Part shown: one piece after another, positions 17,061 to 59,676 of the stretch | How positions within the stretch are numbered: the first letter of the stretch is position 1 | How the letters are laid out: every line of letters begins with the position of its first letter | Sequence record: AP018399.1 | DNA length: 64,000 nt | Reading direction: 5' to 3' (one strand) | Notes under the pieces: generated by a model | The model's input: only the letters and a program-made list of their open reading frames with translations | Databases searched by the model: none | Told to the model about the DNA's origin: nothing | Made by a program: the position numbers and the translations under genes

Positions 17061-17381
17061 ATGAAACTCTCAGAAATCCGTACCGATATCGTTCTTGAGT
17101 CAGACGACGAAAACAAGGACGTTAGCAAGGCTCCGGCTCCCGGCAAGCTAGGTGAATTCATCACCACTAAGCAGGCAGCTAAGATTCTTAAGGTGTCACC
17201 AAGCCGCGTTCGTCAGTTCATTCAGGACGGCCGTCTAAAGACCTACTCACCAGAAGTTGGTCGTCGTGACAACATGCTAAAGCTATCGGCCGTTGAGAAG
17301 CTAGCTGACAAGGAACGTCCAATCACTGGCCGTCCAGATGAAGGCAAGGGCTTCGCAAAAGACGACAAGAAAGAAGACTAA
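17061..17381 (+). CDS. Xis/MerR-type helix-turn-helix DNA-binding protein
   Basis: FITTKQAAKILKVSPSRVRQFIQDGRL; start MKLSEI at 17061 after AAGGA. Confidence 0.8.
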   Translation: MKLSEIRTDIVLESDDENKDVSKAPAPGKLGEFITTKQAAKILKVSPSRVRQFIQDGRLKTYSPEVGRRDNMLKLSAVEKLADKERPITGRPDEGKGFAKDDKKED

Positions 17382-17500
17382 GTTCTAAAATACGGTGCCC
17401 CAATAGTCGTAGGGATTGTCATGTTTCCCTATTGCCTATTGGGGTATTTTATTTGGAATGAAGTTGTAGTAGAATAGACCCGCTTTAACAGGAGTAGAAA

Positions 17501-17740
17501 ATGAGCAAAGCAGTAGTTTACAGTAAGGACCATTGCCCGTGGTGCGTCAAGGCCAAGCAGCTTTTGACTGAAAAGGGTGTGCAGTTTGAAGAGCTAACTT
17601 ACGGTACCCCGCGTGCTGCCAGTAAGGAAATGATTAGCGAAGCGGTTGGCCGCGACGTTAATACCCTACCGCAGATTATCCTTGATGGCGTTTACATCGG
17701 TGGTTACACCGACCTAGCCCGTCACTACGGAGTGCAGTAA
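17501..17740 (+). CDS. grx: glutaredoxin
   Basis: CPWC, TLPQI, IGGY. Confidence 0.9.
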   Translation: MSKAVVYSKDHCPWCVKAKQLLTEKGVQFEELTYGTPRAASKEMISEAVGRDVNTLPQIILDGVYIGGYTDLARHYGVQ

Positions 17741-17744
17741 GACC

Positions 17745-17972
17745 ATGACCGCCGAAATCTATTCAACCCCGGCATGTGGTCAGTGCGTCATGGCGAAGAA
17801 TATCCTCAAGTCTAAGGAAATTCCGTTCACCGAATACACCGTAGGCAAGGACGTGCAGAAAGCGGAGCTAGAAGAGCGAGTCGGTAACCCGGTCCGTTCG
17901 GTGCCGCAAATCTTCATGGACAATGAGTACATCGGCGGTCTTGACCAACTTCGTGCCAAGGTAGCGGCCTAA
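17745..17972 (+). CDS. grx: glutaredoxin/NrdH-like
   Basis: CGQC, SVPQIF, IGG. Confidence 0.9.
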   Translation: MTAEIYSTPACGQCVMAKNILKSKEIPFTEYTVGKDVQKAELEERVGNPVRSVPQIFMDNEYIGGLDQLRAKVAA

Positions 17973-17988
17973 ACCTACCGTTCGTCGG

Positions 17989-18015
17989 AAAGGGCACCTT
18001 CGGGTGCCCTTTTTT
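17989..18015 (+). terminator. intrinsic terminator
   Basis: AAAGGGCACC-ttcg-GGTGCCCTTT plus T tract. Confidence 0.9.
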
Positions 18016-18023
18016 ATTATAGC

Positions 18024-18052
18024 TAGACAAGTGTCCCGACTTAAGGTATACT
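18024..18052 (+). promoter_or_regulatory. sigma70-type promoter
   Basis: TAGACA-17-TATACT. Confidence 0.7.
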
Positions 18053-18082
18053 TCACCAACAATTAACAAGGCTAAAACATTT

Positions 18083-18529
18083 ATGGAATACATCCAAGGC
18101 GATATCACCCACGAAACGTCGGGCCTCATCATCCACGGGGTCAACTGTCAGGGTAAGATGGGGAGCGGCGTGGCTCTAGCCATCAAGATGAAGTGGCCGG
18201 TGGTCTACACCCGCTACATGGAACACGTACAGGGCCGGGAAGCTTTGGGCAAGGTCCAGTTTATCCCGATTGAGGACGGCCTGTACATTGGCAACTGCTG
18301 GACGCAGGAGTTCTTCGGGAACGATGGCAAGATTTATGCCGACCGTGGCGCTCTCCGTCGCTGCCTGTTCCAAGCTCTCGCCTTCTGCGAAACCCACGGC
18401 CTTGAGTTGAAGACGCCGAAGATTGCGTCTGGTCTGGCCGGGTTGAATTGGGACTCGGACGTGGTTCCTATCTTCGAACTGGCCCGCGCAGTGTATCCCA
18501 CGGTTCCCGTGAAAGTGTACGTAATCTGA
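18083..18529 (+). CDS. macro domain ADP-ribosyl hydrolase (DarG/TARG1-like)
   Basis: GDI, HGVNCxGxMGSGVA, PKIxSGLAGLxW. Confidence 0.88.
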   Translation: MEYIQGDITHETSGLIIHGVNCQGKMGSGVALAIKMKWPVVYTRYMEHVQGREALGKVQFIPIEDGLYIGNCWTQEFFGNDGKIYADRGALRRCLFQALAFCETHGLELKTPKIASGLAGLNWDSDVVPIFELARAVYPTVPVKVYVI

Positions 18530-18586
18530 AAAATCAAACATTTTCAGACTAGTTGCACTATATACTTTCAAACAAGGAATTACTTT

Positions 18587-18769
18587 ATGACCCATCCACT
18601 AGATTCAACCCCCACGAAGTACCAAGTGAAGGTAGCAGGCCGAGTAGTCGGTGAAGCTTTCTCACGCGCACAAGCCGACCTTATCGTCAGCCAGCTATCG
18701 GAAAGCGAGAAGACCCAAGCGGTCGTCGTCCCGGTCGCCAGCAACGGCAATCAGGTTCTACTAGGATAA
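18587..18769 (+). CDS. hypothetical protein
   Basis: AAGGA RBS, 60 aa. Confidence 0.65.
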   Translation: MTHPLDSTPTKYQVKVAGRVVGEAFSRAQADLIVSQLSESEKTQAVVVPVASNGNQVLLG

Positions 18770-18779
18770 TACGACAGCC

Positions 18780-18977
18780 ATGAAAAGTCTTGAACGTGCT
18801 GCCATGTATGAAGCCCTTACCGGGGCTATCGAAGAGATTGATGCGATTTTCGAAGAACACGGCTTTAAGCCAGAAGACTTCGACCCGGACAATCTAGAGT
18901 TCGCTGATATCCCCGACCTAGAAATCGCTAAAGTGTACAGCCATGTACACGGGTTAAAAGAAGCAGTAGAAGGATGA
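18780..18977 (+). CDS. hypothetical acidic protein
   Basis: 65 aa, ends at terminator. Confidence 0.65.
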   Translation: MKSLERAAMYEALTGAIEEIDAIFEEHGFKPEDFDPDNLEFADIPDLEIAKVYSHVHGLKEAVEG

Positions 18978-19006
18978 AAAAAGCCCGCTTTCGCGGGCTT
19001 TTTCTT
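18977..19006. terminator. bidirectional intrinsic terminator
   Basis: A6-GCCCGC-tttc-GCGGGC-T5. Confidence 0.9.
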
Positions 19007-19653
19007 TACCATCTTGCTGCGGTTTGTTTCGGGTAGTACAAGCTCTGTACGTCGTCGTTGTAACCCGCGTCGATAATGACCGGGCTACCGTTGTAGATAC
19101 CCCAATTCTTGATGTTGCTGTAGTCGGCAATGTTCGGGTCATAGCTGCCGACATAATCCATCATGGCTTCGGCCAATTCTGATTCGCCATTTACCTTCTT
19201 GGCATCACCACGAGGATAGCGCTTTCCGTGGTATTCACTTGCATAAGCCAATAGGTCGTTTAGCTGTCCACCACATGCCTTGACGAAATCGGCTTCTGTG
19301 GCCTTCTTTGCTAGTTCGGTATGAATCCAAGTAGGTGTTTCATTCTTGGTATCATAGTCGATTAGGGGAATGAACAGTCCAAGCGTGTTCGCATAGTGGT
19401 CGTTAAGCATCTGGGCTTCCACTTCGTTCTGTGCCATACCCTTGCGGTTCTTGGCAACCTTAAGAACAGTGTCACGGCCCTGATACGGAATCACAAATGC
19501 GATTCGTGAACTGCCAGTACCTAGACGCTTAGCGCGTTCCTTGGCGTATGCTACGCGACGAGCGAATGGCACACGGTCGTTGTACATAGCATCGTCCCAA
19601 TCGTCTGGGAGCGGTGCTTCCGATAGGAATTGAGATAGGCGTACTTGCTTCAT
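19006..19653 (-). CDS. protein kinase-like fold protein
   Basis: LGTGSSRIAF (Gly loop), VLKVA, NEVE, DxxxxxNWG, PVIIDAG; start MKQVRL at 19653 (TAATG). Confidence 0.75.
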   Translation of the reverse strand: MKQVRLSQFLSEAPLPDDWDDAMYNDRVPFARRVAYAKERAKRLGTGSSRIAFVIPYQGRDTVLKVAKNRKGMAQNEVEAQMLNDHYANTLGLFIPLIDYDTKNETPTWIHTELAKKATEADFVKACGGQLNDLLAYASEYHGKRYPRGDAKKVNGESELAEAMMDYVGSYDPNIADYSNIKNWGIYNGSPVIIDAGYNDDVQSLYYPKQTAARW

Positions 19654-20057
19654 TATTCGTCGTCTCGGTCTAGGTGACGTGGAGTACGCTGTTCCCAACG
19701 TGCCCAACGGTTCTTCATACGGTTCTCGTGGTGCTTACCGTGATGGATTGATTCTGGATTCAAGTAAGAACCCATGTCATCAAGGTAGGAGTCCACTTCA
19801 TCCACAACAGCCGATAGCTTGTCACGCTGCTTACGTAGCGCTTGACCTAGCTCATGAATACCATTTTCGATATTGCGCGGGTCGTTGTGCATCTGCTTGA
19901 AGGTTTCAGTGAACGGACCATTCAAGAACTCATAGAATTCCTTGGTTGCGCGCTTCACTTCCTGTAGAGCCTGAGCGGCCTGACCAATCTGGAAGTCTTC
20001 CTTTAGGTTGCGCTGGCGGGCTTCATCAAACAATTGGTTCAATTTCTTCTTCGACAC
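19653..20057 (-). CDS. hypothetical coiled-coil late protein
   Basis: GTG 20057 after GAGG; late promoter GATAAATA at 20080-20087. Confidence 0.7.
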   Translation of the reverse strand: MSKKKLNQLFDEARQRNLKEDFQIGQAAQALQEVKRATKEFYEFLNGPFTETFKQMHNDPRNIENGIHELGQALRKQRDKLSAVVDEVDSYLDDMGSYLNPESIHHGKHHENRMKNRWARWEQRTPRHLDRDDE

Positions 20058-20099
20058 GGTAAAATTCCTCAGTTCAACGTATTTATCAGTCCAAGGCCA

Positions 20100-20128
20100 T
20101 TGACATACCCTTAACACCCTGCTATAAT
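20100..20128 (+). promoter_or_regulatory. sigma70 consensus promoter
   Basis: TTGACA-17-TATAAT. Confidence 0.85.
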
Positions 20129-20158
20129 TTCTGGCATAATTTCTTTAAGGACCAATCA

Positions 20159-20662
20159 ATGCATCGTTTTGAGATTTTTGTAGACAGTGACGGCGTTATC
20201 GCAGACTTCGACGGATACGTTCGTCAGAAGTTCGGTAAGCGCGTCTCGGATTTCCAGCCGAAGGGAACCTTCTGGCAAGCATTGACCCATCATGACACCC
20301 ACGTCGAGAAGTTCTTCCGCAACCTGCCGAAGATGAGCGATGCGGATGCTCTGATGACGTTCCTGCTGGCCGGTAGCTTCAAGTCGGTGAAGATTCTGAC
20401 TGCCTGCGGCTACACCCCGAAGGACGCGAAGGAACAGAAGGTCGAATGGTACGCCGAGCATTATCCGGGCGTTGAGTGCATTGTGGTGTCGAAGTCGCCT
20501 GACAAGGCGGAATACGCTCACCCGTACTCCATCCTGATTGATGACCGCGACAAGTCGATTGACCCGTGGCGTGCCAAGGGCGGCATTGGTATCCTGCACA
20601 CCAGCGCCGAAGACACCATCGCTCAGTTGCGGGCCATCGTGGAATCAATGCAGGCTGCGTAA
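20159..20662 (+). CDS. HAD-superfamily 5'(3')-deoxyribonucleotidase-like
   Basis: FVDSDGVIADF, K, LIDD motifs. Confidence 0.85.
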   Translation: MHRFEIFVDSDGVIADFDGYVRQKFGKRVSDFQPKGTFWQALTHHDTHVEKFFRNLPKMSDADALMTFLLAGSFKSVKILTACGYTPKDAKEQKVEWYAEHYPGVECIVVSKSPDKAEYAHPYSILIDDRDKSIDPWRAKGGIGILHTSAEDTIAQLRAIVESMQAA

Positions 20663-21066
20663 TGCATATCTGGACCGCTCCACTCACGGATTACATGGAC
20701 TACTACCACCTTCTGATTAAGAATGTGGAGTACCTTGATTTTCCGTGGGTGAAGACGGCAACCAAAGATGCCATCGAACGCTACGTCAAGAAAGGAAATA
20801 TGTTCAAGATTATCCACGAGAACCAGTTCGTGGGTACTCTGAGCTTCAAGGCTGTTCCGGATGGGCTTGAATTGGGTTACTGGCTTGACCATGATTTCCG
20901 TAACATGGGCATCATGACGCAGCTATTGCGACAACTCAAGCGTAATGGTCAACCGTACATCATCGTGACTGAACTGTCCAATCGTGCCAATCAACGAGCT
21001 TGCGAGAAAGCCGGATTTATCGAATCTCGGCGTGATGAGAAATTCATCACCTACATTTCCCACTAA
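20662..21066 (+). CDS. GNAT (RimJ/RimL-like) acetyltransferase
   Basis: ELGYWLxxDFRNMGIMT, NxAxQRACEKAGF; TAATG start 20662. Confidence 0.85.
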   Translation: MHIWTAPLTDYMDYYHLLIKNVEYLDFPWVKTATKDAIERYVKKGNMFKIIHENQFVGTLSFKAVPDGLELGYWLDHDFRNMGIMTQLLRQLKRNGQPYIIVTELSNRANQRACEKAGFIESRRDEKFITYISH

Positions 21067-21068
21067 TG

Positions 21069-21104
21069 AAAAAGGAAAAGGGGCCAATGGCCCCTTTTCT
21101 CTTT
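21069..21104. terminator. bidirectional intrinsic terminator
   Basis: AAAAGGGGCC-aat-GGCCCCTTTT. Confidence 0.9.
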
Positions 21105-22863
21105 AGTCAAGTACGCATTCATTGACGAAGTAGCCAACTGCGTTACCCGGTTCACACCAGTCATATTGCTGTTGCTCACCCAAACGTTCTGCGTTACATG
21201 GATTTGCGGTTTCATATGCTGCGGCCTGTTGTTGCGCACCGTTCAACGTCGGGATACTACCACATGGCTGCTGCTCATTGAAGCCTTGGTTCACCACTGT
21301 ACGCCATACATAAGCGCCAGCCGATGGTGACGGAGTTACCGAAGGTGCCGGTGTTGGTGTAGGCGTTACGGTACGTGTCGGAGAAACGGCTGGCGTTGGT
21401 GACACTGTAGCAGTTACGGTCGGCGTGACAGTCTGTGTAACAGCCGGAGTAATCGACGGAGTTACCGAAGGCGTCGGCGTCATTGTACGTGTGACTGTCG
21501 GTGTGACTGTAGACGTTACCGAAGGTGTTACAGACGGAGTAACCGAAGCAGTCATCGTGATGGTCACTGTCGGTGTAATCGTCGGTGTCGGAGTTGTGGT
21601 CAACGTCGGTGTTGGTGTAACCGTCTGCGTTACCGTTGGAGTTACGGTCGGTGTCACTGTCGCAGTCGGAGTGAATGTCGGAGTTACCGATGGGGTCGGT
21701 GTGTTTGACGATGTTGGTGTAGGCGTAATCGTCGGTCCCGGCAAATCGAAGATGGTAATGGTCAAACGTTCGCTGATAGCAGCATTGATGTTGAACGGCT
21801 TTGGTTCCGAACATTCATTCAATCCATCGAAGCCAGCGCCAGTTTCGTAACCGTAGATATTGATTGTCGTCTCTGATGCAGACGAATCTTCCAATGTACC
21901 GTCAACCACAAGCACGGTAGCCTGCTGTGCAGTATCGTACCAAGCCTGTGTAATCTTCCACTCACCGTTGTTGGTGTCGGAATCTCCTTCAATCCACACC
22001 TTGCGGTTCGGAATGAAGCCTGTGCGAAGCTGGATAGCACCATGTACGCCGTCCACTTCTGAATCGGTTAGGCGAGCCTGCGTGTCTGGTGTAAGCTGTA
22101 GAACGGTATCACCACCAACGATACTGAATCCGTCAATCTGGTAGACACCATTGTTCTTGTTGTCCGCATCCACAAGGATACTGCCAAGCGTGGTAGCAGG
22201 TAGGGTGCGGTTCAAAGTAATTGTCGTGATGCCACCAGCAAAGGTAGCGGCCAGTACACCGTAGTGACCATCATTGGCTCCGGCATTCTGGATTTCAAGG
22301 TTAATCTTGGCAAGGAACTGAGCCGCGTGGTCACCGGAGATAGTCACAGTGGTTCCGCTGGCCGTCAGCATTTGATATGAATTCTTACGGACCACCCAGA
22401 ACATTTCGTGGTTAGCGAAGTACGCACTCTGGTCACCAGCAACGACGATGCTCCCTAGGTTGGGAATCGACTTGATGTTGAGGTAGGTGTCGTACAGGTG
22501 GGAGCCGGGGACAACAATCTGGCCGGATGCTCCGGCAATGCTGTCAACTGGAAGCGTGACTAGAAGGTCGCTATTGTCGAAGATAAGGCCGAAACCGCCG
22601 ATACATTCGAACAGGTCACAGCAATCAAGAGCATCGAAGCCGCAATCGTCATCGAAGTTCAAGCCGAAGCCAACACCCTTACACAATGGGTCGTTAGCCA
22701 AAGTGATTTCGAAACTAGGCGTTTCTTCGAATTCTACACTGATTTCTTCGCGGAAGACGTACTGCTCAACGATTTCAAGGATTTTGGTGTGGTACGGTTT
22801 AATGTCACCAAAATACTTGATGAAGGAGTCAATAGGTCGGACGATTGATGAGTCGCAAGCCAT
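21103..22863 (-). CDS. virion structural protein with long Pro/Thr/Val tract
   Basis: late promoter CATAAATA 22889-22896; N-terminal KPYHTK; ~140-aa (V/T)TP(S/T) tract; Cys-containing C-terminal cap. Confidence 0.7.
   Translation of the reverse strand: MACDSSIVRPIDSFIKYFGDIKPYHTKILEIVEQYVFREEISVEFEETPSFEITLANDPLCKGVGFGLNFDDDCGFDALDCCDLFECIGGFGLIFDNSDLLVTLPVDSIAGASGQIVVPGSHLYDTYLNIKSIPNLGSIVVAGDQSAYFANHEMFWVVRKNSYQMLTASGTTVTISGDHAAQFLAKINLEIQNAGANDGHYGVLAATFAGGITTITLNRTLPATTLGSILVDADNKNNGVYQIDGFSIVGGDTVLQLTPDTQARLTDSEVDGVHGAIQLRTGFIPNRKVWIEGDSDTNNGEWKITQAWYDTAQQATVLVVDGTLEDSSASETTINIYGYETGAGFDGLNECSEPKPFNINAAISERLTITIFDLPGPTITPTPTSSNTPTPSVTPTFTPTATVTPTVTPTVTQTVTPTPTLTTTPTPTITPTVTITMTASVTPSVTPSVTSTVTPTVTRTMTPTPSVTPSITPAVTQTVTPTVTATVSPTPAVSPTRTVTPTPTPAPSVTPSPSAGAYVWRTVVNQGFNEQQPCGSIPTLNGAQQQAAAYETANPCNAERLGEQQQYDWCEPGNAVGYFVNECVLD
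21315..21740 (-). repeat. low-complexity VTP(S/T) coding repeat
   Basis: imperfect 12-nt units (gtcggtgtcact-like). Confidence 0.85.
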
Positions 22864-22909
22864 TCAAGGGTTCCATAAGAGCTTGCTTTATTTATGGGAT
22901 GGTAAAACG

Positions 22910-23116
22910 TTAGGAAATAATCTTTTTGACTTCGGTGAAGAACTTTTCAGAGAAGTTCTTACCGTCGAGTTCAAGCTTGTTGTGACGGGCAGCGTCTACC
23001 ATTTCTGTAAGACGAGCCAACTCAATCTGTGAATTCAACATGGCCTTCAAATCCGATGCTGAAATGTCACGAGCACTAATCTTGATAAACGACTTCTGCA
23101 TAGACTTGTTCCTCAC
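22910..23116 (-). CDS. hypothetical late protein
   Basis: perfect TATAAATA at 23134-23141, GAGGA RBS. Confidence 0.65.
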   Translation of the reverse strand: MRNKSMQKSFIKISARDISASDLKAMLNSQIELARLTEMVDAARHNKLELDGKNFSEKFFTEVKKIIS

Positions 23117-23220
23117 AATTAATCTATGTAGAATATTTATACCTGACCTTTGATTATAGGGTAAGTAATTGATATCGTTGAACTTAAAAGTGTGACGTAG
23201 TTCCCTACTTTTCGCCTAAT

Positions 23221-24255: not shown

Positions 24256-24287
24256 TCTCCGATTATAGCATGAATCCTACTTGCGAA

Positions 24288-25001
24288 TCAACGCTTCTTC
24301 TTGCGAGAAGTGAGTTCCGCCTTAGCCTTACGTGGGTGCTTGGCTGGGGCTTCTTCAACTTCCGTGGCTTCTTCGACTGTGCTTTCGCCAGCCATCGGAA
24401 GAGCGTCACTTTCAGAGCCTAGGATTTCACGATTGCCAGACTTCATGAGACGGTCTAGGACTTCATCTGAACTGAACCAGAAATCCTTCCCATCAAGCAT
24501 AGCAGCAATTTCTTCCTTGGTCATGAGGTCGGCGTACAGAGCGTAGGCAATGTGGTCGAAATAGCGTTCGGTGAACTTCACCTGTTCGCGAACATCCGAA
24601 CCCTTTCCTTCAACGCCGTGGCTGTACTTGTGAACCATGAACGCACCGAACGGATTGATGATGTGCTTATGGCCCGCTAGGAAGATGATGGTAGCCGCTG
24701 AACAGGCTTCGCCTTCTAGGCAGGTAATCACAGTACCATTACAGTTCTGGATGGCGTTGATAATCTGAATCGTGGTGTATAGGCTACCACCGACGCTGTT
24801 GATGTAGATGAAAACGGTGTCGTGTTCTTCGACGGTCTTCAAGGTCTGCACCAAATCCAGATACTTTTCTGGCCCTTCAATGACCCCAAGGATATAAAAG
24901 TGATGGAGGGTCACTTGGACAACTTGCTTATAATTCGGAATCTTCTCCGAACCAATCTGAGGCAACAGTAGTAGCTCTGTATCTTCACTCGTGTTCTTCA
25001 T
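24288..25001 (-). CDS. clpP: ClpP-like serine protease
   Basis: INSVGG, GEACSAATIIFLAG, FMVH, DFWFS; late promoter GATAAATA 25040-25047. Confidence 0.8.
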   Translation of the reverse strand: MKNTSEDTELLLLPQIGSEKIPNYKQVVQVTLHHFYILGVIEGPEKYLDLVQTLKTVEEHDTVFIYINSVGGSLYTTIQIINAIQNCNGTVITCLEGEACSAATIIFLAGHKHIINPFGAFMVHKYSHGVEGKGSDVREQVKFTERYFDHIAYALYADLMTKEEIAAMLDGKDFWFSSDEVLDRLMKSGNREILGSESDALPMAGESTVEEATEVEEAPAKHPRKAKAELTSRKKKR

Positions 25002-25165
25002 TAAATTGTCCTGTTGGTTGTAGAATTTCTTCTACCCAATATTTATCGGACGATTCAACGGTTTAAAGAAACAGAGGCGTACCAATGACTTGGCTTAATT
25101 TAATTATAACTTATTGATATCCCTGCAAGTTCTATTCCAAACTTGCAGGGGTAACCGGTTGACAA

Positions 25166-27079: not shown

Positions 27080-27101
27080 GGGTGTCCTTAAAGTTTCCGC
27101 A

Positions 27102-34823: not shown

Positions 34824-35001
34824 TGTCTAGTTCCTGTCTGATTTTCTTAATTGATTTACCATTCTTGGTCAGTTCGACCGAAATGGTGATGGTACTGCTA
34901 TTGTCCGAAGACTGCAACAGGGTGATACGACCCTGTTGCATGAGTTCCTTCACAGTACGATACATTTCCAATTGCTTTGAATCGTCGTCTGAAAGAGCCA
35001 T
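34804..35001 (-). CDS. hypothetical protein
   Basis: TAATG-coupled to acb1-like gene. Confidence 0.65.
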   Translation of the reverse strand: MALSDDDSKQLEMYRTVKELMQQGRITLLQSSDNSSTITISVELTKNGKSIKKIRQELDSGYGYR

Positions 35002-35573
35002 TATTTATCGTCCTCTTTCTTCTCGTCGTCCTTGTCATCGCTGGCATCCTTGGCCCAATCAAGGTTGAGGGGTTCGTAATACTCTTCGGCGATTTCAATC
35101 TTGTCGATGTGTTCCTTAATGTCGAAGTCCTTTGGAATCTGCCAGTCTTCGCCCACGTCGTAACACAGGGTTGCATGAATCTTGTATTCATCGTAGTCGT
35201 ACTGTGCCCCGTATTCCTTGTTGAAATACTCGTGACGTTCCTTCATTTCCGGACAGTCGAAGCGCAGCACTAGAGCGCGACTACCAGACTGCGTAGGGAA
35301 GATTTCAAGCTTGGTTGGAGTACCAATCCAAGGCTCTTTCATCTTACCGTGGATGGTGAAGTCCTTGAACGGCTTGCGACTGTACACGATGGTGCAGTGC
35401 ATCTTCTTACGTTCGACACGGTTTTCCTTCGAAATACCCAGAGTTTCCGCTAGCTTGGCTAGCTTGTTCTGAGTGGCCTTTGAAAAGTGTACCGCAATGT
35501 ATGTTCCGTCTTTGCCGAGTTCGGTGATTCGTGTTTCCTTCTCAAGCAAAATTTCTGCCAAATGTCTACCCAT
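35001..35573 (-). CDS. acb1: 2H phosphodiesterase, Acb1/T4 57B-like anti-CBASS nuclease
   Basis: GxYxAxxFS, HCTIVYSR, GAxxDxDxYxxHATLCYDVG, EYYEPLNLDWA match T4 57B as I recall it. Confidence 0.82.
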   Translation of the reverse strand: MGRHLAEILLEKETRITELGKDGTYIAVHFSKATQNKLAKLAETLGISKENRVERKKMHCTIVYSRKPFKDFTIHGKMKEPWIGTPTKLEIFPTQSGSRALVLRFDCPEMKERHEYFNKEYGAQYDYDEYKIHATLCYDVGEDWQIPKDFDIKEHIDKIEIAEEYYEPLNLDWAKDASDDKDDEKKEDDK

Positions 35574-36420: not shown

Positions 36421-36453
36421 TTAGAAATTCCTTAAAGTCCAATCATAAATACT

Positions 36454-36665
36454 ATCAGAATCAGACGAAATTTTCAAGAGAGCGTCTGGTTTGAAAGATT
36501 TGCAACCTACTATTTACTGACAGTTTGGACTAATGCGAAGCATAACAACTCCTGCTCTCCCTTTACAATCCACTTATCTACCCCTAAGACAATCTTTGCA
36601 CACGGGCGCTCTCGTCTCTGATTTCACGAAGGAGAGTAATTGACTTAAACTTGAATCTCAATTAC
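36454..36665 (+). ncRNA. candidate structured RNA or leader upstream of phoH
   Basis: CATAAATA at 36444; long-range complementarity 36459-36500 with 36591-36623. Confidence 0.3.
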
Positions 36666-49980: not shown

Positions 49981-49982
49981 AA

Positions 49983-50287: not shown

Positions 50288-50845
50288 TTAAGAAAGTCCT
50301 TCATACTTGTTTCGTTCCTCATTCAAATCCGCAGGCTTGTACGTGTCATCAAAGACACCGCGTTCAATACGGTAGACTTCACCAGCAATGGCCTCTTCCG
50401 GGTCCGTGACCGGACAGGCTAGAAAGTCACCTTCCTTGCATAGCATGTCTTCATCCCAACTGGCTCTGAACTTGAAGGTCGGACCCTTGTATTCGTAGGC
50501 ATAGATTAGACCCTTCGCCTTGTAGTCTTGGAATTCGTCAGTCAGTTCCTTGTCCACTTCGTAGCGGTCATTGAACTTCTTGGTTGAAACGACATACATT
50601 TCGCCCTTCGGACCCTTGATGACGACTTCACCATCCTTCACGGTCTTCTCGGTTTCCTTCTCTCCGTCAATCTCGGTGACAACGTGTTCACCGGGCTTGC
50701 CGTTTCTGGCCTTGAATGTTCCGGACTTCTTGTACAGCTTCACGTCTTCATCGTGAGCGGCCAGCTTCTTGTTCATTTCACCAATCATGGTGTCCTGTGA
50801 CTTTACCGGTCTGGTACCTTCGGTGATAATGTCATGGAGTTTCAT
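50288..50845 (-). CDS. PGDYG-like protein
   Basis: YKK..AR..GE...G...V..GPKGExY...KFxxRYE; SW..GDFL..YRIERxxFxxTY. Confidence 0.6.
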   Translation of the reverse strand: MKLHDIITEGTRPVKSQDTMIGEMNKKLAAHDEDVKLYKKSGTFKARNGKPGEHVVTEIDGEKETEKTVKDGEVVIKGPKGEMYVVSTKKFNDRYEVDKELTDEFQDYKAKGLIYAYEYKGPTFKFRASWDEDMLCKEGDFLACPVTDPEEAIAGEVYRIERGVFDDTYKPADLNEERNKYEGLS

Positions 50846-51583: not shown

Positions 51584-51987
51584 TTTCCATGCCATAGGTA
51601 TGCGGGAGTGACCGCGATAATGCTTCCGGAGTGTCCACCGACGTGTCCCCAACCACCGACGTATGCACGCCATCCAAGCGAGTTGCTACCATCATGGTCT
51701 TCATCACGGAACCAGCCTTCCAGTTCGACGGTCTTTGCGTCGTCGGAAGACGTGAGCCATTGCCATGCAAGGTCAGCCGCAGCTTCGGCTTCCAGCGGAA
51801 CCGGTAGAGCATTGGCTTTGGCAGGGTCAGAGACGTACCAATGCAGCACCAGACCGTTCTTCTTGTCGAACGTCCAATACTTTGCTTTGGTGTTGCGGCC
51901 TTCTTGGGCGAAAGCCAGCTTGAACGCCATACGCAGTTGTTCTTGCGTCTCGCCGTTCATATCAAATACGCGATTGTCGAAGCTCAT
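51580..51987 (-). CDS. hypothetical protein
   Basis: AAGGA RBS, ATGA overlap with NADAR. Confidence 0.75.
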   Translation of the reverse strand: MSFDNRVFDMNGETQEQLRMAFKLAFAQEGRNTKAKYWTFDKKNGLVLHWYVSDPAKANALPVPLEAEAAADLAWQWLTSSDDAKTVELEGWFRDEDHDGSNSLGWRAYVGGWGHVGGHSGSIIAVTPAYLWHGK

Positions 51988-52044
51988 AATGTTCCTTTAA
52001 GTGTCCTATAATAACAAAGGCTCGCCAAAATGGCAAGCCCTTGT

Positions 52045-52311
52045 TCATTTTTCAAAGTTCATCTTGGCTGTGTAGTACGGTGTCCAAGACTCAAAGTTTT
52101 CTTTGTCAAATGGTATCGGTTGGAAGTTCGGAACTTCCTGATACTTGGCAACGAACTCCTGAATTTCTTCAAGATTGGTGAACCACAAGCGACACTTAAT
52201 CCATTTCCAGTTAATGTCCCCTTGCGGATTTCGCCAATTCTTGATGAAGCTCATCAGGAGCATCGGGCCATCACCGGGAGTGGCCCCGGTGTAGCCTAGT
52301 CCTATACTCAT
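52045..52311 (-). CDS. hypothetical protein
   Basis: 88 aa downstream of NMNAT-Nudix. Confidence 0.6.
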   Translation of the reverse strand: MSIGLGYTGATPGDGPMLLMSFIKNWRNPQGDINWKWIKCRLWFTNLEEIQEFVAKYQEVPNFQPIPFDKENFESWTPYYTAKMNFEK

Positions 52312-52320
52312 GTGAGTTCC

Positions 52321-53424: not shown

Positions 53425-53512
53425 ATGTTCGACTCCCGAATCAATGGTTGAAGCTTACTCTTATATAGGGCTGTTGTCAAGTACCTAAACTGTGGTACAA
53501 TAAATATCGGGT

Positions 53513-53839
53513 ATGAATATCATGGAAATCGTCAACCAGCCACAGATTAAGGTCGAAGCTGTCCGCAAGGGCGGTGATAAGGGCCGTACCCTATTGCTTG
53601 CAGACCTGAACGGCCAGAATCCGGTCGGTCACATCAAAGCAGTCCTTCAAAAGATTAAGGACAAGTTCGTTGATGGAGAGGTCACAAAGATTCGGTTGGA
53701 AGAGCGTAGCCCGGTCATATTCACTGTCGTTCCTCAGTTCGGAACCGACGTGTACCGATTCACCATCAGCTTCCCGGAAGGAATGGAGGACATTCAGAAG
53801 TCCTTGATGACCGGGATATCCAACTTCGTGAACGCCTGA
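53513..53839 (+). CDS. hypothetical late protein
   Basis: AATAAATA at 53499-53506. Confidence 0.7.
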   Translation: MNIMEIVNQPQIKVEAVRKGGDKGRTLLLADLNGQNPVGHIKAVLQKIKDKFVDGEVTKIRLEERSPVIFTVVPQFGTDVYRFTISFPEGMEDIQKSLMTGISNFVNA

Positions 53840-54009
53840 TAGCCGCACTTGTTGGCTTCAATCACGATACGTTCCACGTCTGGTAGACACATCGAACACC
53901 CCAGCGAAGCTCCTGTTTCATACATGAGTTTCGTAAGCGTGTTGTGACCATCCGCGATGGCCTTCTTCAAGTCGTCTTCCGTCAACCCTGCACAAATACA
54001 CACAAACAT
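53794..54009 (-). CDS. bfd: bacterioferritin-associated ferredoxin-like [2Fe-2S] protein
   Basis: VCICxG...GCxxC; TTGACA-17-TACTAT promoter. Confidence 0.85.
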   Translation of the reverse strand: MFVCICAGLTEDDLKKAIADGHNTLTKLMYETGASLGCSMCLPDVERIVIEANKCGYQAFTKLDIPVIKDF

Positions 54010-54038
54010 AAAAAGAAAGCCCTGATTACTCAGGGCTT
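54010..54038 (-). terminator. intrinsic terminator
   Basis: AAGCCCTGA-gtaa-TCAGGGCTT plus T tract. Confidence 0.8.
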
Positions 54039-54063
54039 ATAGTATTAAGAATTGTTCTTATTG

Positions 54064-55320
54064 TCAAGCGCTTTCGTCACCGACGTATGGATTCACCGCG
54101 TTGGCTAGCCAGTTGATTAGCTTCGGCGGGAAGAAGTCGGTTAGTGGTGACATTAGGGTTTCGAAATAAATCTGAGCCTTCTTCACACCTTCCAAATCGT
54201 TTGTCGATAGGTCTTGTAGAATCTGGTTCAAGCAATCTACGGCCTGCTGCTTAATGCTCTTGTCGTCATAACCCTTGTCATCGTAGCGTAGGATGGCCTG
54301 ATTTAGCTCGGCGATACGCTGCTTGACTTCTGCCTTCACGGCAGCAGGTAGACGAATCTTCGTTCCCTGTTCGAACTTCACGCCTGAGTTCTCAGTCGGT
54401 CCATTCTGGTAATCGACTTCTACTTCTGTCGGGGTCAAATCCTTCTCAAGAATACGGGCTACGATATCTTCAACAGACTCTTCGACTGCTCCTGCCTTCT
54501 TAGCAACCCATTCTTGGGCCTTTGATACCGGCATAGCAAACCATGCTCCCGGACCATTATGCCATGTATTCTTATCGTATGCACGGCTTTCTGCTTCTTC
54601 CTTTGAAGAATAGCGAATGGCATCTTCCAAGTTTCCGCCACGTTCTAGGCCAAGGAATGACCAAATCTGTCCATCGCCGCCAACGGCAACAACGTACTCT
54701 TCACCAACGGCTTCTTCAACCTTCACTTCTACTTTAACGGTCTTCTCGTCGCCTTCCTTGTCCTTCTTTTCAGAGTCGTCCTTCTTGTCTTCCTTCTTAT
54801 CGTCAGAATCCTTGTCGTCCTTCTCTTCCTTATCGTCATCCTTCTTCTCGGACTTCTTTTCGTCCTTGTCGTCTTCCTTATCGTCCTTCTTGTCCTTTAG
54901 GAAAGCAGGCTTGTCGTCATCCTTGTCGGAATCCTTTTTGTCTTCCTTGTCGTCGTCCTTCTTGGAATCCTTGTCATCGTCCTTTTCGTCCGAATCCTTT
55001 TTGTCTTCCTTGTCGTCGTCCTTCTTGTCGTCGTCCTTGGCTTCTAGCACAGGCTCGACGGCACAAGCTTCTTCGGATTCCTTGACTTCCGACTTCTCGG
55101 CGTCTTCTAGCTTCTTTAGGCATTCGTTGACTAGCTTCAACTCTTCTGCTGCATTCTTGTACTTGAAAGATGCACGAGCGGCAGTAGCCATGATGCCTTG
55201 AAGTTCTTTCTTCACGGCCTGTAGGCCAGCTTTGTCGCGGTCAGCATACTTCTTCTCACCGAAGGCTTCGGTAAGCGTGTGGATGCCAGATAGTTTGGTT
55301 AGACGTTCGATGCTATTCAT
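54064..55320 (-). CDS. highly charged probable prohead core/scaffold or internal head protein
   Basis: several [LV]xE-[AS] sites; ~100-aa Asp/Lys tract; KPAFL. Confidence 0.6.
   Translation of the reverse strand: MNSIERLTKLSGIHTLTEAFGEKKYADRDKAGLQAVKKELQGIMATAARASFKYKNAAEELKLVNECLKKLEDAEKSEVKESEEACAVEPVLEAKDDDKKDDDKEDKKDSDEKDDDKDSKKDDDKEDKKDSDKDDDKPAFLKDKKDDKEDDKDEKKSEKKDDDKEEKDDKDSDDKKEDKKDDSEKKDKEGDEKTVKVEVKVEEAVGEEYVVAVGGDGQIWSFLGLERGGNLEDAIRYSSKEEAESRAYDKNTWHNGPGAWFAMPVSKAQEWVAKKAGAVEESVEDIVARILEKDLTPTEVEVDYQNGPTENSGVKFEQGTKIRLPAAVKAEVKQRIAELNQAILRYDDKGYDDKSIKQQAVDCLNQILQDLSTNDLEGVKKAQIYFETLMSPLTDFFPPKLINWLANAVNPYVGDESA
54740..55040 (-). repeat. low-complexity D/K coding repeat
   Basis: repeated DDDKEDKKDSD units. 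Confidence 0.85.
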
Positions 55321-55329
55321 TAGTTTCCC

Positions 55330-55659
55330 TTAAACGGTTTGTGTCCAGTGTGCTTTCATACCACGGGAATCTCTCAAAGAAGTCACGGCATCAGCAATCA
55401 ATTCATTGTACTGTGCCCAACGGTCTTTCAGGTATGCCAGTGGCTTTGGAACTTCAAGTTCGGCAAATGCAAAATCGACAAGTTCGACTGCACTACGCCA
55501 TTGCTTTTCCAAATCTTTAGCTTGTTTATTTATCTCTTTTTGAAGCGCAGACATGGTATCCGCTGGGAAAGCTTCCTGCGGGTCAGTCTCTACGAAGACA
55601 ATCTTCTTCTTTTCGGGCTTCTTTTCCTTAGCCTCAATCAATGATTGAAGGAATTTCAC
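55330..55659 (-). CDS. hypothetical late protein
   Basis: starts MKFLQSLIEA. Confidence 0.7.
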   Translation of the reverse strand: MKFLQSLIEAKEKKPEKKKIVFVETDPQEAFPADTMSALQKEINKQAKDLEKQWRSAVELVDFAFAELEVPKPLAYLKDRWAQYNELIADAVTSLRDSRGMKAHWTQTV

Positions 55660-56036
55660 TTCTTCTGTTCCTTTGCCTTGGCTTCTGCTTCGGCCTTCTT
55701 CTTGGCACGGTAGTCATCTACCGACTTCTGCCAGTATTGGTTCGTCTCAATTGACTTGGCGAACACGTCCGAGATATCGGATAGGTTGTCAAGCAATGCA
55801 CCTAGCTGGTCTTGAGTCAGAACGAAGAACACCTTGTCCTTATTCTCGGCCTTGGCTGCTTCCTCGGCTAGACGCTTCTGATTCCATGCCTGCCACTCAA
55901 CGTCCTGTAGGTTTAGCTCAGGAGTGCGGTCAGGGTCAACAACAACGTATTCCTGCGTTGGCGGAACTTCCTTGCAGAACTTGGAACAAGAGGCTAGGGT
56001 TAGAGTTAGGAAAATGGCGGCTAGTAGCTTTTTCAC
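55656..56036 (-). CDS. o-spanin (Rz1-like lipoprotein)
   Basis: lipobox LASC, Pro-rich start, follows TM-coiled-coil gene. Confidence 0.7.
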   Translation of the reverse strand: MKKLLAAIFLTLTLASCSKFCKEVPPTQEYVVVDPDRTPELNLQDVEWQAWNQKRLAEEAAKAENKDKVFFVLTQDQLGALLDNLSDISDVFAKSIETNQYWQKSVDDYRAKKKAEAEAKAKEQKK

Positions 56037-56455
56037 TTTGTTTTACCTCGTGATGCGTCTTCGAAGCGCTGGAACACTTGCTTGGTAATCTGGTTAGCTT
56101 CGGCTTCCAACTGTGCGGAATTAGCACCACCCGGAGCAACCGGAGTGTTCTTCAAGCCGTTGACCTTGGCCTGTAGGGCGGCAGTCTGAGTGCTGATTTC
56201 GCCAAGACTGGTACGTAGCTCGGCTAGGTCTGCCAGAGCCTTGTCAGTGCTGGCCTTGTATTCGGTGAATTGCTTGTTGGTGTTGTCCAACTTGGTGGAT
56301 AGTGCCGTATTCTGAGTCTTAAGTTCGTCGGTCTTGGTTTCCAACATCGACGCACGATGATACTGCCAGCCCAAACCTAGGGCTAGAAGACCAATCAAAG
56401 AAATGATGATAATCCACTTGTATGCAGCGATTTGTGCTTTAATGGTAGTGAACAT
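56033..56455 (-). CDS. i-spanin (Rz-like)
   Basis: one N-terminal TM then long coiled coil. Confidence 0.7.
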   Translation of the reverse strand: MFTTIKAQIAAYKWIIIISLIGLLALGLGWQYHRASMLETKTDELKTQNTALSTKLDNTNKQFTEYKASTDKALADLAELRTSLGEISTQTAALQAKVNGLKNTPVAPGGANSAQLEAEANQITKQVFQRFEDASRGKTK

Positions 56456-56459
56456 AAGA

Positions 56460-56496
56460 AAACCCGTCTATCATGTTATTTATAATAGACGGGTTT
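56460..56496 (-). promoter_or_regulatory. late promoter TATAAATA inside a 12-bp inverted repeat next to the spanin start
   Basis: AAACCCGTCTAT-tataaataacatg-ATAGACGGGTTT-tcttATG. Confidence 0.75.
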
Positions 56497-56501
56497 GGGG
56501 T

Positions 56502-56786
56502 TTACTTCTTACGGGATAGTTGAGCGACTTCTGAGTCCAAATCGTTCAGCTTTTGTCGGTCGATGACCTGAGTTCGTCGCAATGCCGCAAATTTGGTTTG
56601 AATTAGGTTGTCTGCCTTCTTCATCAAGTTGTTGACGTAGGTTGTCAACTTCTTGTCTGCCTCACGCAGTTCCTTGTTTTCATCCTGCAACTTACGAATA
56701 GCCTTGGCTTGGGCTTCGATTTCTTTCGTAGCCATCTTCTTAAATTTTTCGAATTCGTCGCGCAAGGCTTTTACGTCATCACTCAC
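56502..56786 (-). CDS. coiled-coil hypothetical protein
   Basis: GATAAATA at 56811-56818; heptad pattern. Confidence 0.7.
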   Translation of the reverse strand: MSDDVKALRDEFEKFKKMATKEIEAQAKAIRKLQDENKELREADKKLTTYVNNLMKKADNLIQTKFAALRRTQVIDRQKLNDLDSEVAQLSRKK

Positions 56787-57372
56787 TTTCTAGGCACCGT
56801 TTAACGAGCTTATTTATCATCCTAATGGACTTAAGCGTGTACTCAATGTCCTCTAGAGCGTTGTGCATACGGCGTGGAGCTAGCTCCATCTTGGAGAACA
56901 GTTCGTCCGAATCGAACGCCTGAACTGCCACTAGGCCGATGGTGAACGAGTCGATGACACGGTGGGAGAACTTGAGTTCAATATCGAACTTACGTAGAAG
57001 AGCCTTGAGGAAGAACTTGTCAAAGCTGGCCGCATTGTGACCACAAAGGGTGATGCCCTTGGTTGTGTCAAAGTGACGCATGATGAGTTCAAGGATTTGG
57101 GCCGCAGCCTCTTCCTCATCCACACCATTCTCTTCCAAGTATTCCTTAGACAGACCGTGAATCTTGTAAGCGAAGTCGCTCCATTCCGATTCGCCGTTCC
57201 ACTTAATTTCAAGGTACAGCTTTTCGATTTCCTTGAAGGTCTTCGGGTCTGAAACAATTAGACCAATCGACACCATCTGGTAGTTCACCGAAGGGTCATC
57301 GCCCTTGGTGTTCATACCGGACGTTTCACAGTCGATGGCTAGGAACTTGTGGAATTCACTACCCTTGCTCAT
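56779..57372 (-). CDS. DEDDh 3'-5' exonuclease
   Basis: IDCETSG, GHNxxFD, HNALED. Confidence 0.88.
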   Translation of the reverse strand: MSKGSEFHKFLAIDCETSGMNTKGDDPSVNYQMVSIGLIVSDPKTFKEIEKLYLEIKWNGESEWSDFAYKIHGLSKEYLEENGVDEEEAAAQILELIMRHFDTTKGITLCGHNAASFDKFFLKALLRKFDIELKFSHRVIDSFTIGLVAVQAFDSDELFSKMELAPRRMHNALEDIEYTLKSIRMINKLVKRCLESE

Positions 57373-57977
57373 GATGCATCCTTTAGATTGCGTAGAGTAC
57401 GCAGTACGATAGTCTGTAGTTCTGCCGCAGCAACGAACGCATTACCTTCCACGTTGTTGATTGTGTAGGTGATGTTCTCTGGCTTTAGCGGTTGTTCGGA
57501 AGCATGGTTTGAGGTTGCGATGGTCTTCTGACCTTCACGGACCACGCGAATCACTAGCCCTGCATCCTGACCCTTAATGAATTCGGCTTCGTTATCAAAG
57601 CGAGCATCGGTGATGAACGCGATATCGACGCCAGAGGTTAGGATGGTTGATTCAAGTGACTTAATCCAGATATCATCGCGGATGCCCTTACGGCAAGCTT
57701 CGGTACCCAATTGCTGGGCCATCTGGCGGGGTGACAGGTTCCAGTACGGAATCGTCTCTTCCTTCTTGTTACGGTCGAAGAACCATTCAAGAGGAACGTC
57801 GAAGATGACTGATGCAGCCTTCTTCAAGTTGTCGGCGAATGCAAAACATTTGACATTCAGGCCGTGGTCTTTCTGTAGGGATAGGAGTACCATGTTCGCC
57901 ACGGTGTCCTTTCCGGCTCCCGCTAGACCATTGATACCAATGATTAGAGGGACTTTTGCTAGATTTGTTTCAGACAT
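57369..57977 (-). CDS. deoxynucleoside monophosphate kinase (T4 gp1-like)
   Basis: GLAGAGKDTVA, RxxxQxLGTE, DARFxNE, HASE. Confidence 0.88.
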   Translation of the reverse strand: MSETNLAKVPLIIGINGLAGAGKDTVANMVLLSLQKDHGLNVKCFAFADNLKKAASVIFDVPLEWFFDRNKKEETIPYWNLSPRQMAQQLGTEACRKGIRDDIWIKSLESTILTSGVDIAFITDARFDNEAEFIKGQDAGLVIRVVREGQKTIATSNHASEQPLKPENITYTINNVEGNAFVAAAELQTIVLRTLRNLKDAS

Positions 57978-58040
57978 TAAACGTTTCCTTGATGTTGCAA
58001 CCCACATTGTAAGTGAATTGCAACATCAAGTCAAGTACGT

Positions 58041-58745
58041 TTACTGTGGTAGGCCGACGATGTGTAGGAACTGCACGTTGCCAGTGGTTGAAGTATCGGC
58101 ACGCTGCTGGCCGTCCTTCGAATCTTGAGTGCCGGGGTCAATGTCTGTACCGGCTAGGATAGCACGGCGAATCTGTGTTTCACGCTTAATGTCGTTGCCG
58201 ACATTGTAAATCCAAAGCTCTTCGAAGTTGCCGTCGTCCATCTTACGCTTGAACACTAGGTTCGCACCACGGACTGTACGGATTTCACCTTGGAAGTCTG
58301 GGTTGCTGTCAGCAGCATCCGGGTCGTTTGTGGCAATGTCGTCAGCCTGATTCTGCGACATATCATCAAAGTCCTGCTCTTCTTCATCAGAGTTTAGAAC
58401 TTCGTCGCCAACATCGAAGGCGAAGTCATCAGCGGATTCGCCACCTTCTTCACCACCACCAAGCTCATATCCGCCACCGTCGCCAATGGCTTCGTCACCA
58501 AGGGCACCTAGTTCAAGCGATTCATCACCGAACTCAAATGGTTCGTCATCAAGAGCTAGGTTCGCTAGGTCTGAGAAATCCAACCCACCGACAACATCGC
58601 TGTCGTCATCCTGATACTCGCCACCTAGTAGCGAATCAAGGTCTAGGTCCGCCAGAGCGTCTAGGTCAAGTTCCTCGTCAGTGTCGAGGTTAAAGGCACG
58701 CACATCTTCAAGGAGGGCTTTCAAAGTTTTCATGTTAGATTCCAT
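58041..58745 (-). CDS. acidic late (probable virion) protein
   Basis: GATAAATA at 58760-58767; MKTLKALLED; Asp/Glu-rich linker then globular C-terminus. Confidence 0.7.
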   Translation of the reverse strand: MESNMKTLKALLEDVRAFNLDTDEELDLDALADLDLDSLLGGEYQDDDSDVVGGLDFSDLANLALDDEPFEFGDESLELGALGDEAIGDGGGYELGGGEEGGESADDFAFDVGDEVLNSDEEEQDFDDMSQNQADDIATNDPDAADSNPDFQGEIRTVRGANLVFKRKMDDGNFEELWIYNVGNDIKRETQIRRAILAGTDIDPGTQDSKDGQQRADTSTTGNVQFLHIVGLPQ

Positions 58746-58841
58746 TAGTTCTTAAGTAATATTTATCAGGATTTTGATTTATTACAGCCGAATTTATGGA
58801 ATCCTAAATATTGTAAGCTGAAACAACAAGTTAAGAACACC

Positions 58842-59279
58842 ATGAAAAAGCACCCAGCAATTCCACTGATTACTGAACCGCATCCGGATGGGTACACAGG
58901 CTACCCGTTCCTAACTCTGATTCGCTACAACGATGAGAACTACCTGAACATCATCGACAACGTAGTGAACAAGCAGATTGTGGGCTACAACCTAGACCTA
59001 TGTGCGGCGTCTAACATTGACGAACTTGTCGTTGTCAGCATCGCCGAAGACTGGTTCTACAGTGAACGTCACAAGAAGTACCCACTATCGGTGGAGTTCT
59101 CCAAGCTTGGCTATGCAAGCAAGCTACGCCCAATCCTACGCTGCTATCCAGTTGAATTCGTGACTCGCGTCATCGGACCACTACCAGAGTACAAGATGGG
59201 CGGTGTCTTCAAGTCCAAGAAGAAAAAGAAGAAGTCGATTCCACCGGAAATCGAATTCCAAGACAAGCGCTTTAAATAA
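58842..59279 (+). CDS. hypothetical protein
   Basis: 145 aa, basic C-terminus. Confidence 0.75.
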   Translation: MKKHPAIPLITEPHPDGYTGYPFLTLIRYNDENYLNIIDNVVNKQIVGYNLDLCAASNIDELVVVSIAEDWFYSERHKKYPLSVEFSKLGYASKLRPILRCYPVEFVTRVIGPLPEYKMGGVFKSKKKKKKSIPPEIEFQDKRFK

Positions 59280-59676
59280 GCGTCTTTAGAACAGGATACG
59301 CTACGGCTTCCGTGGCGTCCTGAAACTCATCCTTGACGGCGTTCTGCTGGTCAAGAACTTCCTGTCCCTCTTCCGTTACCTGTCCAGTATCGTCAACTAG
59401 ATTGTTGTTGGCGAGAGCTTCCTGTCCAGCGTCCGTCACACCAGCACGGGCACCGTTGGTATCAATGTTGATTAGACCCATGCTACGAAGCTGCTGTGCG
59501 GCCTGTGACACGTTCTCTGAGCCTGTGGTGGCCTCGTATGCCAATTCCGGTGTGGGAGCCGCGTAGATGCTTAGAAGCACGCTCTTCTGCGTGTCAGTTA
59601 GGCGAACGGTTGATGCAGCGTTACCACCCATTGGCGGCATTGTGGAGAAAGCGGTTAGCTCTTGTAGAAACTTCAT
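59272..59676 (-). CDS. hypothetical protein
   Basis: starts MKFLQEL; ATGA overlap. Confidence 0.7.
   Translation of the reverse strand: MKFLQELTAFSTMPPMGGNAASTVRLTDTQKSVLLSIYAAPTPELAYEATTGSENVSQAAQQLRSMGLINIDTNGARAGVTDAGQEALANNNLVDDTGQVTEEGQEVLDQQNAVKDEFQDATEAVAYPVLKTLI

Follow-up and report, generated by a model that had tools for sequence, protein, structure and literature searches.

In bacteriophage T4 the prohead protease gp21 cuts its substrates after L/I-X-E, and for encapsidation the N-terminal 10 residues of internal protein IPIII are enough (PMC9026906). The internal proteins of T-even phages are diverse, sharing only a conserved targeting sequence (PMC3012670; PMC9026906). The present analysis concerns nine proteins with N-termini of this kind, dispersed over a stretch of 64,000 nucleotides (the window) that is identical to bases 62001-126000 of AP018399.1, the record of Xanthomonas phage XacN1. 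XacN1 is a 385-kb jumbo myovirus and distant kin of the Rak2-like phages (PMC5852040). A preliminary reading of the same letters (the sequence-only reading) had proposed that the phage packages and ejects a kinase, a DNA-binding protein and an enzyme (Acb1) directed against the cyclic-oligonucleotide-based anti-phage signalling system (CBASS), all acting before any phage gene expression.

By likeness to T4, it is probable (roughly 0.6) that a T4-type system of capsid-targeting propeptides operates in XacN1 and its relatives, with some of the nine as members. The proposal holds up in the protease, the late promoter and the conserved, modular leaders of three protein families; it holds up poorly for ORF211 and ORF227, which are weak candidates, and for ORF171, which is off the motif. 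Acb1 is a good candidate by its leader but lies in an early operon. Following the T4 analogy, a leader of about 6-20 residues ending in Leu/Ile/Val-x-Glu and attached to otherwise unrelated proteins would bring each of them into the prohead scaffolding core. The gp21-family protease ORF297 would then cut after the Glu, and the mature protein would stay in the head with the DNA, or leave if it were a core component. Targeting, cleavage and ejection of the carriers are what we infer from this comparison.

The nine N-termini

The nine N-termini quoted by the sequence-only reading are all annotated CDS starts, belonging to the open reading frames (ORFs) ORF164, ORF170, ORF171, ORF185, ORF211, ORF218, ORF219, ORF225 and ORF227; ORF171 and ORF219 start with GTG. 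The [ILV]xE ending ascribed to the set is found in eight of the nine, which match the L/I-x-E propeptide ending once Val is permitted at position P3. The ninth, ORF171, has F-D-E at the proposed cut, with Phe at P3. Leaders were described with short degenerate patterns of at most 13 positions. Counts for the window refer to its 107 ORFs, and proteome-wide counts to 346 proteins taken from annotated start codons in 263 kb of the XacN1 record (62-325 kb).

Leaders conserved in three protein families

The three families with conserved leaders are those of ORF170, ORF164 and ORF185; ORF171 is the neighbour of ORF170.

19006-19653, minus strand: ORF170, a 12-residue leader ending L-S-E, then a minimal protein-kinase-like fold; PHROG 4301 family
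19653-20057, minus strand: ORF171, heading the late ORF171-ORF170 unit; its leader is like that of ORF170 but ends F-D-E
17061-17381, plus strand: ORF164, a 13-residue leader ending V-L-E, an acidic linker, HTH_17 (residues 34-84) and a D/K-rich tail
35001-35573, minus strand: ORF185, Acb1, a 2H phosphoesterase extended by 22 residues at the N-terminus (L-L-E at residues 9-11) and with a tail rich in D, K and E

The ORF170 family comprises 505 homologues, mostly on large phage contigs. Among the best 120 of these the leader is present in 119, mostly with a length of 8-19 residues. Of these 119 leaders, 106 have L at P3, 12 have I and one has V; P2 varies freely, 117 have E at P1, and the next residue is A, T or S in 110. 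The conserved core of the family begins after the leader's Glu and small residue. All four distant homologues that were examined have a T4-type late promoter directly ahead of the gene or at the head of its operon.

ORF170 had been called a kinase. A profile search returned no Pfam match for it, and the assignment stands instead on a predicted protein-kinase fold with conserved motifs. The model has a predicted local distance difference test score (pLDDT) of 90.6 overall and of 54 over residues 1-10. Compared with the PDB it gave 169 matches at E <= 0.001, and each of the 50 listed is either a protein kinase or an aminoglycoside phosphotransferase (E ~1e-4; template-modelling (TM) scores of 0.34-0.45). 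A bilobal kinase fold is marked by a Gly-rich loop, a Lys, a Glu, an Asp/Asn in the catalytic loop and a D-x-G; ORF170 agrees with this pattern, and its equivalents of the Lys, Glu, Asp/Asn and D-x-G are conserved. Among 53 sequences K65, E79 and the D195-x-G197 motif do not vary, 52 retain N183, and D177 is retained in 47 and replaced by Glu in 6.

The helix-turn-helix (HTH) predicted for ORF164 is borne out by a match to HTH_17 (PF12728) over residues 34-84 (1.2e-7; 32.3 bits against a cut-off of 27). In all 38 homologues listed, counted by eye from the listing rather than by script, a leader of variable length runs up to a Leu/Ile/Val-x-Glu, and an acidic linker connects it to the HTH. The gene appears to form a late unit of its own, with a terminator-like site at 17427-17444.

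ORF185 was correctly recognised as Acb1: residues 22-176 cover positions 1-144 of the 144 in PF23474 (4.2e-43), and the alignment with PDB 7T26 (1e-20) includes both H-x-T motifs. The Pfam and PDB alignments place the start of the Acb1 core at residue 22-23. Each of the 38 relatives with a recognisable core carries an extension of 8-24 residues containing [LIV]xE, whereas the crystallised, T-even, Acinetobacter and Vibrio T4-like Acb1 proteins have just 0-11 residues before the core. In Shigella phage Shfl2 (L019, 377-1162) the Acb1 gene (57B) is directly followed by a gene annotated 'internal head protein'; anti-CBASS and capsid-loaded proteins are therefore neighbours there even without a leader on Acb1.

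The tails or tracts rich in D, E and K to which the sequence-only reading drew attention are present in ORF164, ORF185, ORF171 and ORF218. Such tails at the C-terminus are rare (6 of the 346 proteins), and four of the six tailed proteins have leaders (ORF164, ORF185, ORF385 and ORF448). At this frequency (P = 0.07) leader and tail were not accepted as a joint signature, and the tails are left unexplained. The composition of the tail is kept in relatives of ORF164 and of Acb1; no such tail occurs on T-even or Slicko01 Acb1.

Leaders shared by unrelated proteins

A second line of evidence is the sharing of leaders between proteins that are not homologous. ORF219, ORF314 and ORF352 have their first 9-10 residues in common and nothing else by blastp, which rules out paralogy. 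Their codons differ and their upstream DNA is unrelated, and a duplicated DNA cassette was ruled out on these grounds. Seven XacN1 proteins, five of them late, start with M-[K/R]-four residues-[L/I]-x-E. The expected number is 0.53, and seven were reached in 0 of 5000 shuffles.

The same arrangement is found in Alishewanella phage Slicko01, which has a gp21-type protease 46% identical to ORF297 as well as Gp23-like capsid, portal and gp55-like genes. One 13-residue leader is common to ten Slicko01 proteins, eight of which are encoded by consecutive genes ending with the ORF170 homologue. The carriers include an ART-PolyVal protein (2e-11) among the eight and a dispersed Acb1 homologue (1.7e-30). 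The DNA encoding the leader is 63% identical with many synonymous differences, and the upstream DNA is 33% identical; selection therefore acts on the peptide. In the Slicko01 record the gene for the Gp23-like major capsid protein bears the label 'DNA polymerase I' (L018, 40130-41377; record 140130-141377).

Further examples come from other contigs carrying ORF170 homologues. In one (L015) the homologue shares its leader with neighbouring amidoligase genes, and in another (L024) with other neighbours. In a third, of 315 kb (L022), the homologue directly follows the Gp23 capsid gene and has a leader of the ORF314/352/219 type. In L015, an unrelated contig, the operon with the ORF170 homologue is closely preceded by a ClpP gene (8745-9365).

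Protease, late promoters and transcription units

Outside the window, at 175133-175759 of the record, ORF297 is a Peptidase_S77 prohead protease of the T4 gp21 family (PF03420, 8.9e-20) with >1000 tblastn matches in the T4 superfamily. ORF303 is annotated as a late sigma factor (gp55-like). The sequence ATAAATA occurs 16 times in the window, against 4.4 expected. Of the 52 sites in the 263 kb, 46 are followed within 60 nt by a start codon on the same strand, and the genes behind them include the scaffold/capsid operon and those for portal, sheath and baseplate. By position and sequence ATAAATA (NATAAATA) is the late promoter of the structural genes. A site of this kind about 20-35 nt before the start codon may be used as a rule for annotating late genes in genomes of this group. 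The promoters and terminator relevant to the nine candidates are as follows.

17024-17031, plus strand: late promoter CATAAATA, 29 nt upstream of ORF164
20080-20087, minus strand: late promoter GATAAATA, 22 nt upstream of ORF171
56477-56484, minus strand: late promoter TATAAATA, heading the ORF221-220-219-218 unit
58760-58767, minus strand: late promoter GATAAATA, 26 nt upstream of ORF225
54017-54038: strong terminator-like site at the end of the ORF221-218 unit, after ORF218
36449-36477, minus strand: sigma70-like promoter (TTGAAA, 17 nt, TAGTAT), ahead of the operon ORF187-ORF186 (dihydrofolate reductase, DHFR)-ORF185

The claim that several candidates follow NATAAATA late promoters is sound: the sites are real, and ORF164, ORF171 and ORF225 each lie directly downstream of one. 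Late units predicted in this way hold seven of the nine candidates (ORF164, 171, 170, 218, 219, 225 and 227) and 34 of the 107 genes in the window (P = 0.004), a test that is not independent because the nine were partly chosen on promoters. Late expression of these seven is thus a prediction from their position, and for ORF227 the link is doubtful since ORF231 is followed by a terminator-like site. ORF185 and ORF211 lie outside the predicted late units.

Other candidates and neighbouring genes

The remaining five candidates are listed below.

55330-55659, minus strand: ORF219, a 9-residue leader ending L-I-E, then a K/E-rich linker
58041-58733, minus strand: ORF225, a 9-residue leader ending L-L-E, very acidic
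54064-55320, minus strand: ORF218, an 18-residue leader ending L-T-E and a D/K tract of ~100 residues, acidic; last gene of its late unit
59272-59676, minus strand: ORF227, L-Q-E at residues 4-6 only; a weak to moderate candidate
50288-50845, minus strand: ORF211, a leader ending I-T-E at residue 9, with no late promoter; a weak candidate

The motif is retained in the few available relatives of ORF219, ORF218 and ORF225. Scans of IMG/VR turned up few relatives of ORF219 and ORF225 and none of ORF314, ORF352 or ORF170. Judged by sequence, ORF170 (kinase-like), ORF164 (HTH) and ORF219 are good candidates for cargo, and ORF185 is a good candidate by its leader but is predicted to be expressed early. 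ORF225 and ORF218 likely carry the signal but, being acidic, may belong to the core or scaffold. The evidence is weak for ORF227 and ORF211.

The identification of ORF211 as PGDYG (PF14083) is not upheld by the profile, where its score of 17.5 bits is under the curated cut-off of 27. The protein belongs to a large family of domains of ~150 residues that are also found repeated in giant proteins. In two of these, of 1612 and 3743 residues (P0198 and P0199), the domain occurs 8-16 times in tandem. In phage Xoo-sp13 it forms the C-terminal half of a 332-residue protein with a P-loop N-terminal half (L009, 16188-17186), and in XacN1 it stands alone.

Several neighbouring features were noted. In the late unit that contains ORF219 and ORF218, ORF221 (with an N-terminal membrane helix) and ORF220 (with a lipoprotein signal ending in Cys) resemble an i-/o-spanin pair (55656-56455, minus strand). 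The promoter of the unit, TATAAATA, sits within a terminator-like stem-loop of 15 bp (56460-56496). A perfect sigma70 consensus (TTGACA, 17 nt, TG, TATAAT; 20100-20128, plus strand) precedes ORF172, a 5'-nucleotidase, and adjoins the oppositely oriented late promoter of ORF171. ORF174 (586 residues; 21103-22863, minus strand) contains a long stretch of repeats rich in Thr and Pro and has a late promoter to itself; since glycoprotein bands are reported in the XacN1 paper, it is possibly a virion protein that is glycosylated. ORF177 (24288-25001, minus strand) is ClpP-like (CLP_protease, 1.8e-18), with a late promoter at 25040-25046.

Frequency of the bare motif

An [ILV]xE ending at residues 6-20 is present in 31 of the 107 window ORFs, against 21-23 in shuffles (P ~0.01-0.04), and internal windows carry it at 19%. 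The motif is also found on DHFR, topoisomerase, methyltransferase and dCMP deaminase. Across the 346 proteins, [LI]xE at the T4-like position (residues 7-10) is observed in 25 against ~14.5 expected (P = 0.005). The excess extends over residues 6-13 (43 observed, 29 expected) and 14-20 (40 observed, 25 expected) and stops at residues 21-29 (27 observed, 32 expected). An excess of about 25-30 proteins may represent the size of the true leader-bearing set, or a general N-terminal bias. The association of the generic motif with late genes is only weak (41% in late genes, 28% in others; P = 0.08). A refined motif requiring a small residue after the Glu was also tried. It gave 21 against 8.6 in the window and head region and was rejected on a hold-out of 176 proteins, where 8 were found and 8.8 expected. 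Real leaders are instead told from noise by conservation in homologues, by position outside the fold and by sharing among unrelated proteins.

Weighing the evidence

A number of observations weigh against capsid targeting of the nine. The bare [ILV]xE motif is common and by itself can neither identify cargo nor single out the nine, and [LI]xE at residues 7-10 shows no preference for late genes among the 346 proteins. In the ORF211 family the motif is present only at the background rate (37 of 111 single-domain homologues, 33%). The Xoo-sp13 orthologue of ORF171 has Gln in place of the Glu; ORF171 shares the leader type of ORF170, but its cleavage is doubtful. Leaders in XacN1 are much less uniform than in Slicko01. 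The homologue sets of ORF164, ORF170 and ORF185 were obtained with a word-indexed search that favours closer relatives. Acidic proteins such as ORF225 would be odd cargo beside DNA, and ORF225 and ORF218 both resemble parts of the prohead core more than they do effectors for injection. The published text on the XacN1 virion names ORFs other than the nine (PMC5852040), and the virion enzymes reported for XacN1 (ORF272, ORF279 and ORF322) are without such a leader. The location of ORF185 in the DHFR operon behind a sigma70-like promoter indicates that it is expressed early, not late. Finally, T4 gp21 is reported to trigger CBASS CD-NTases (cGAS/DncV-like nucleotidyltransferases) late, by cutting an I/LxE loop (10.64898/2026.03.04.709575). 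This late triggering by the prohead protease itself weakens the rationale that Acb1 must act before any gene expression. With regard to other phages, the virion analysis of RsoM2USA was limited to the most abundant gel bands, and a literature search found no study of virion proteomics for Xoo-sp13.

The strongest alternative is that the leaders do target the prohead, but that several carriers, especially the acidic ORF225, ORF218, ORF227 and ORF296, are parts of the core or scaffold that are degraded or expelled, and not effectors. The net charges of these proteins (-49, -34, -11 and -19, respectively) are consistent with such a role. ORF296 adjoins the prohead protease gene and lies behind TATAAATA, and ORF225 is weakly similar to it (E = 0.005). 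Similar leaders are found on the scaffold-like ORF275 and the core-region ORF300, and the T4 core proteins gp22, gp67 and gp68 are cut up and mostly leave the head (PMC9026906). The enzymes, however, are without an obvious assembly role: the kinase-like fold with its conserved motifs, Acb1 and ART-PolyVal. This alternative is quite plausible, if short of an even chance.

It is improbable that the leaders reflect chance and ordinary N-terminal composition, that is, amphipathic helices rich in Leu, Lys and Glu picked from a large background. The prevalence of the motif in the window, its occurrence on DHFR and other enzymes, the spread of the proteome-wide enrichment over residues 6-20 in general and not in late genes specifically, the failed hold-out and the ORF211 family all agree with chance. 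Against it, [LIV]xE is retained in 100% of three unrelated families in which the middle residue and the length of the leader vary, and non-homologous proteins share leaders whose peptide is conserved despite synonymous codon change.

The conserved L-x-E leader on an Acb1 that is expressed early would also fit a regulatory role gated by the protease. In this case the leader would be cut in the cytoplasm, and enzymes such as Acb1 would be switched or relocated when proheads form. The late activation of CBASS CD-NTases by gp21 at an I/LxE loop is compatible with this, and suggests that an Acb1 bearing a leader may connect to the protease otherwise than by pre-loading. Gating without encapsidation lacks a precedent, however, and loading into the head is a better fit to the occurrence of one leader on a range of unrelated proteins whose genes lie in late structural operons, in one case right behind the capsid gene; gating is considered unlikely. 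That the leader is a degradation or processing tag for the ClpP-like ORF177 would agree with the late promoter of that gene and with the ClpP gene in L015, and is very improbable, as no ClpP match was found in Slicko01, which has the clearest leader set, and the conserved L/I-x-E agrees with the published specificity of gp21 (PMC9026906).

A broader form of the capsid-targeting proposal can be put forward only tentatively, and as a whole it is more doubtful than not. A distant branch of the T4 superfamily, comprising XacN1-like jumbo phages, Slicko01-like phages and many uncultured ones, would pre-load its capsids by means of interchangeable leaders with a toolbox of a minimal protein kinase, Acb1, an ADP-ribosyltransferase, amidoligases and a small HTH protein, so that counter-defence and host take-over arrive with the DNA. 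In a variant of this proposal the leader would couple Acb1 to the protease by which CBASS is triggered. If true, the leader would be a label, readable from sequence, for virion-delivered effectors in a large and mostly uncultured group of big phages, and a packaged kinase and a packaged anti-CBASS enzyme would be indicated. Neither was found described in the literature searched.

Comparison with known systems

The closest parallel is with IPI, IPII, IPIII and Alt of T4 and their protease gp21. Both systems have a short N-terminal L/I-x-E propeptide, a protease of the same Pfam family, and a T4-type late promoter and sigma factor. In both, one leader is found on unrelated, fast-evolving proteins, at times in tandem arrays, and an ADP-ribosyltransferase is among the Slicko01 carriers, as Alt is among those of T4. 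The first seven residues of the 'internal head protein' of Shfl2, a single T-even example, bear a qualitative resemblance to some leaders of the ORF170 family and to that of ORF225. The leaders here differ in being 6-18 residues long, with other sequences and several types per genome, and are known from sequence alone. The T4 internal proteins are small and basic, whereas the carriers here are mostly enzymes or acidic proteins; Acb1 is among them, and T-even Acb1 is without such a leader.

Phages phiKZ, 201phi2-1 and SPN3US, with their ejection or inner-body proteins, are similar in having large heads, many internal proteins and propeptides cut after a Glu that follows a short motif (PMC9026906; PMC10052503). 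They belong to another lineage with distant gp21 homologues, whereas the XacN1 protease matches Peptidase_S77 directly and the head genes are T4/Rak2-like.

With respect to described Acb1 proteins (PDB 7T26/7T27; T4 gp57B), ORF185 matches both the Pfam family and the PDB chain, including the two H-x-T motifs. The conserved leader of ~22 residues and the D/K/E-rich tail set ORF185 and its close relatives apart from the crystallised and T-even forms.

Iyer, Burroughs and Aravind reportedly described polyvalent proteins in 2017, with effector domains such as ART-PolyVal for which delivery into the host along with the DNA is predicted. The leader-bearing proteins of Slicko01 likewise include an ART-PolyVal protein. 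Polyvalent proteins fuse their domains in one giant polypeptide, whereas the carriers described here are separate small proteins, each with a leader of its own.

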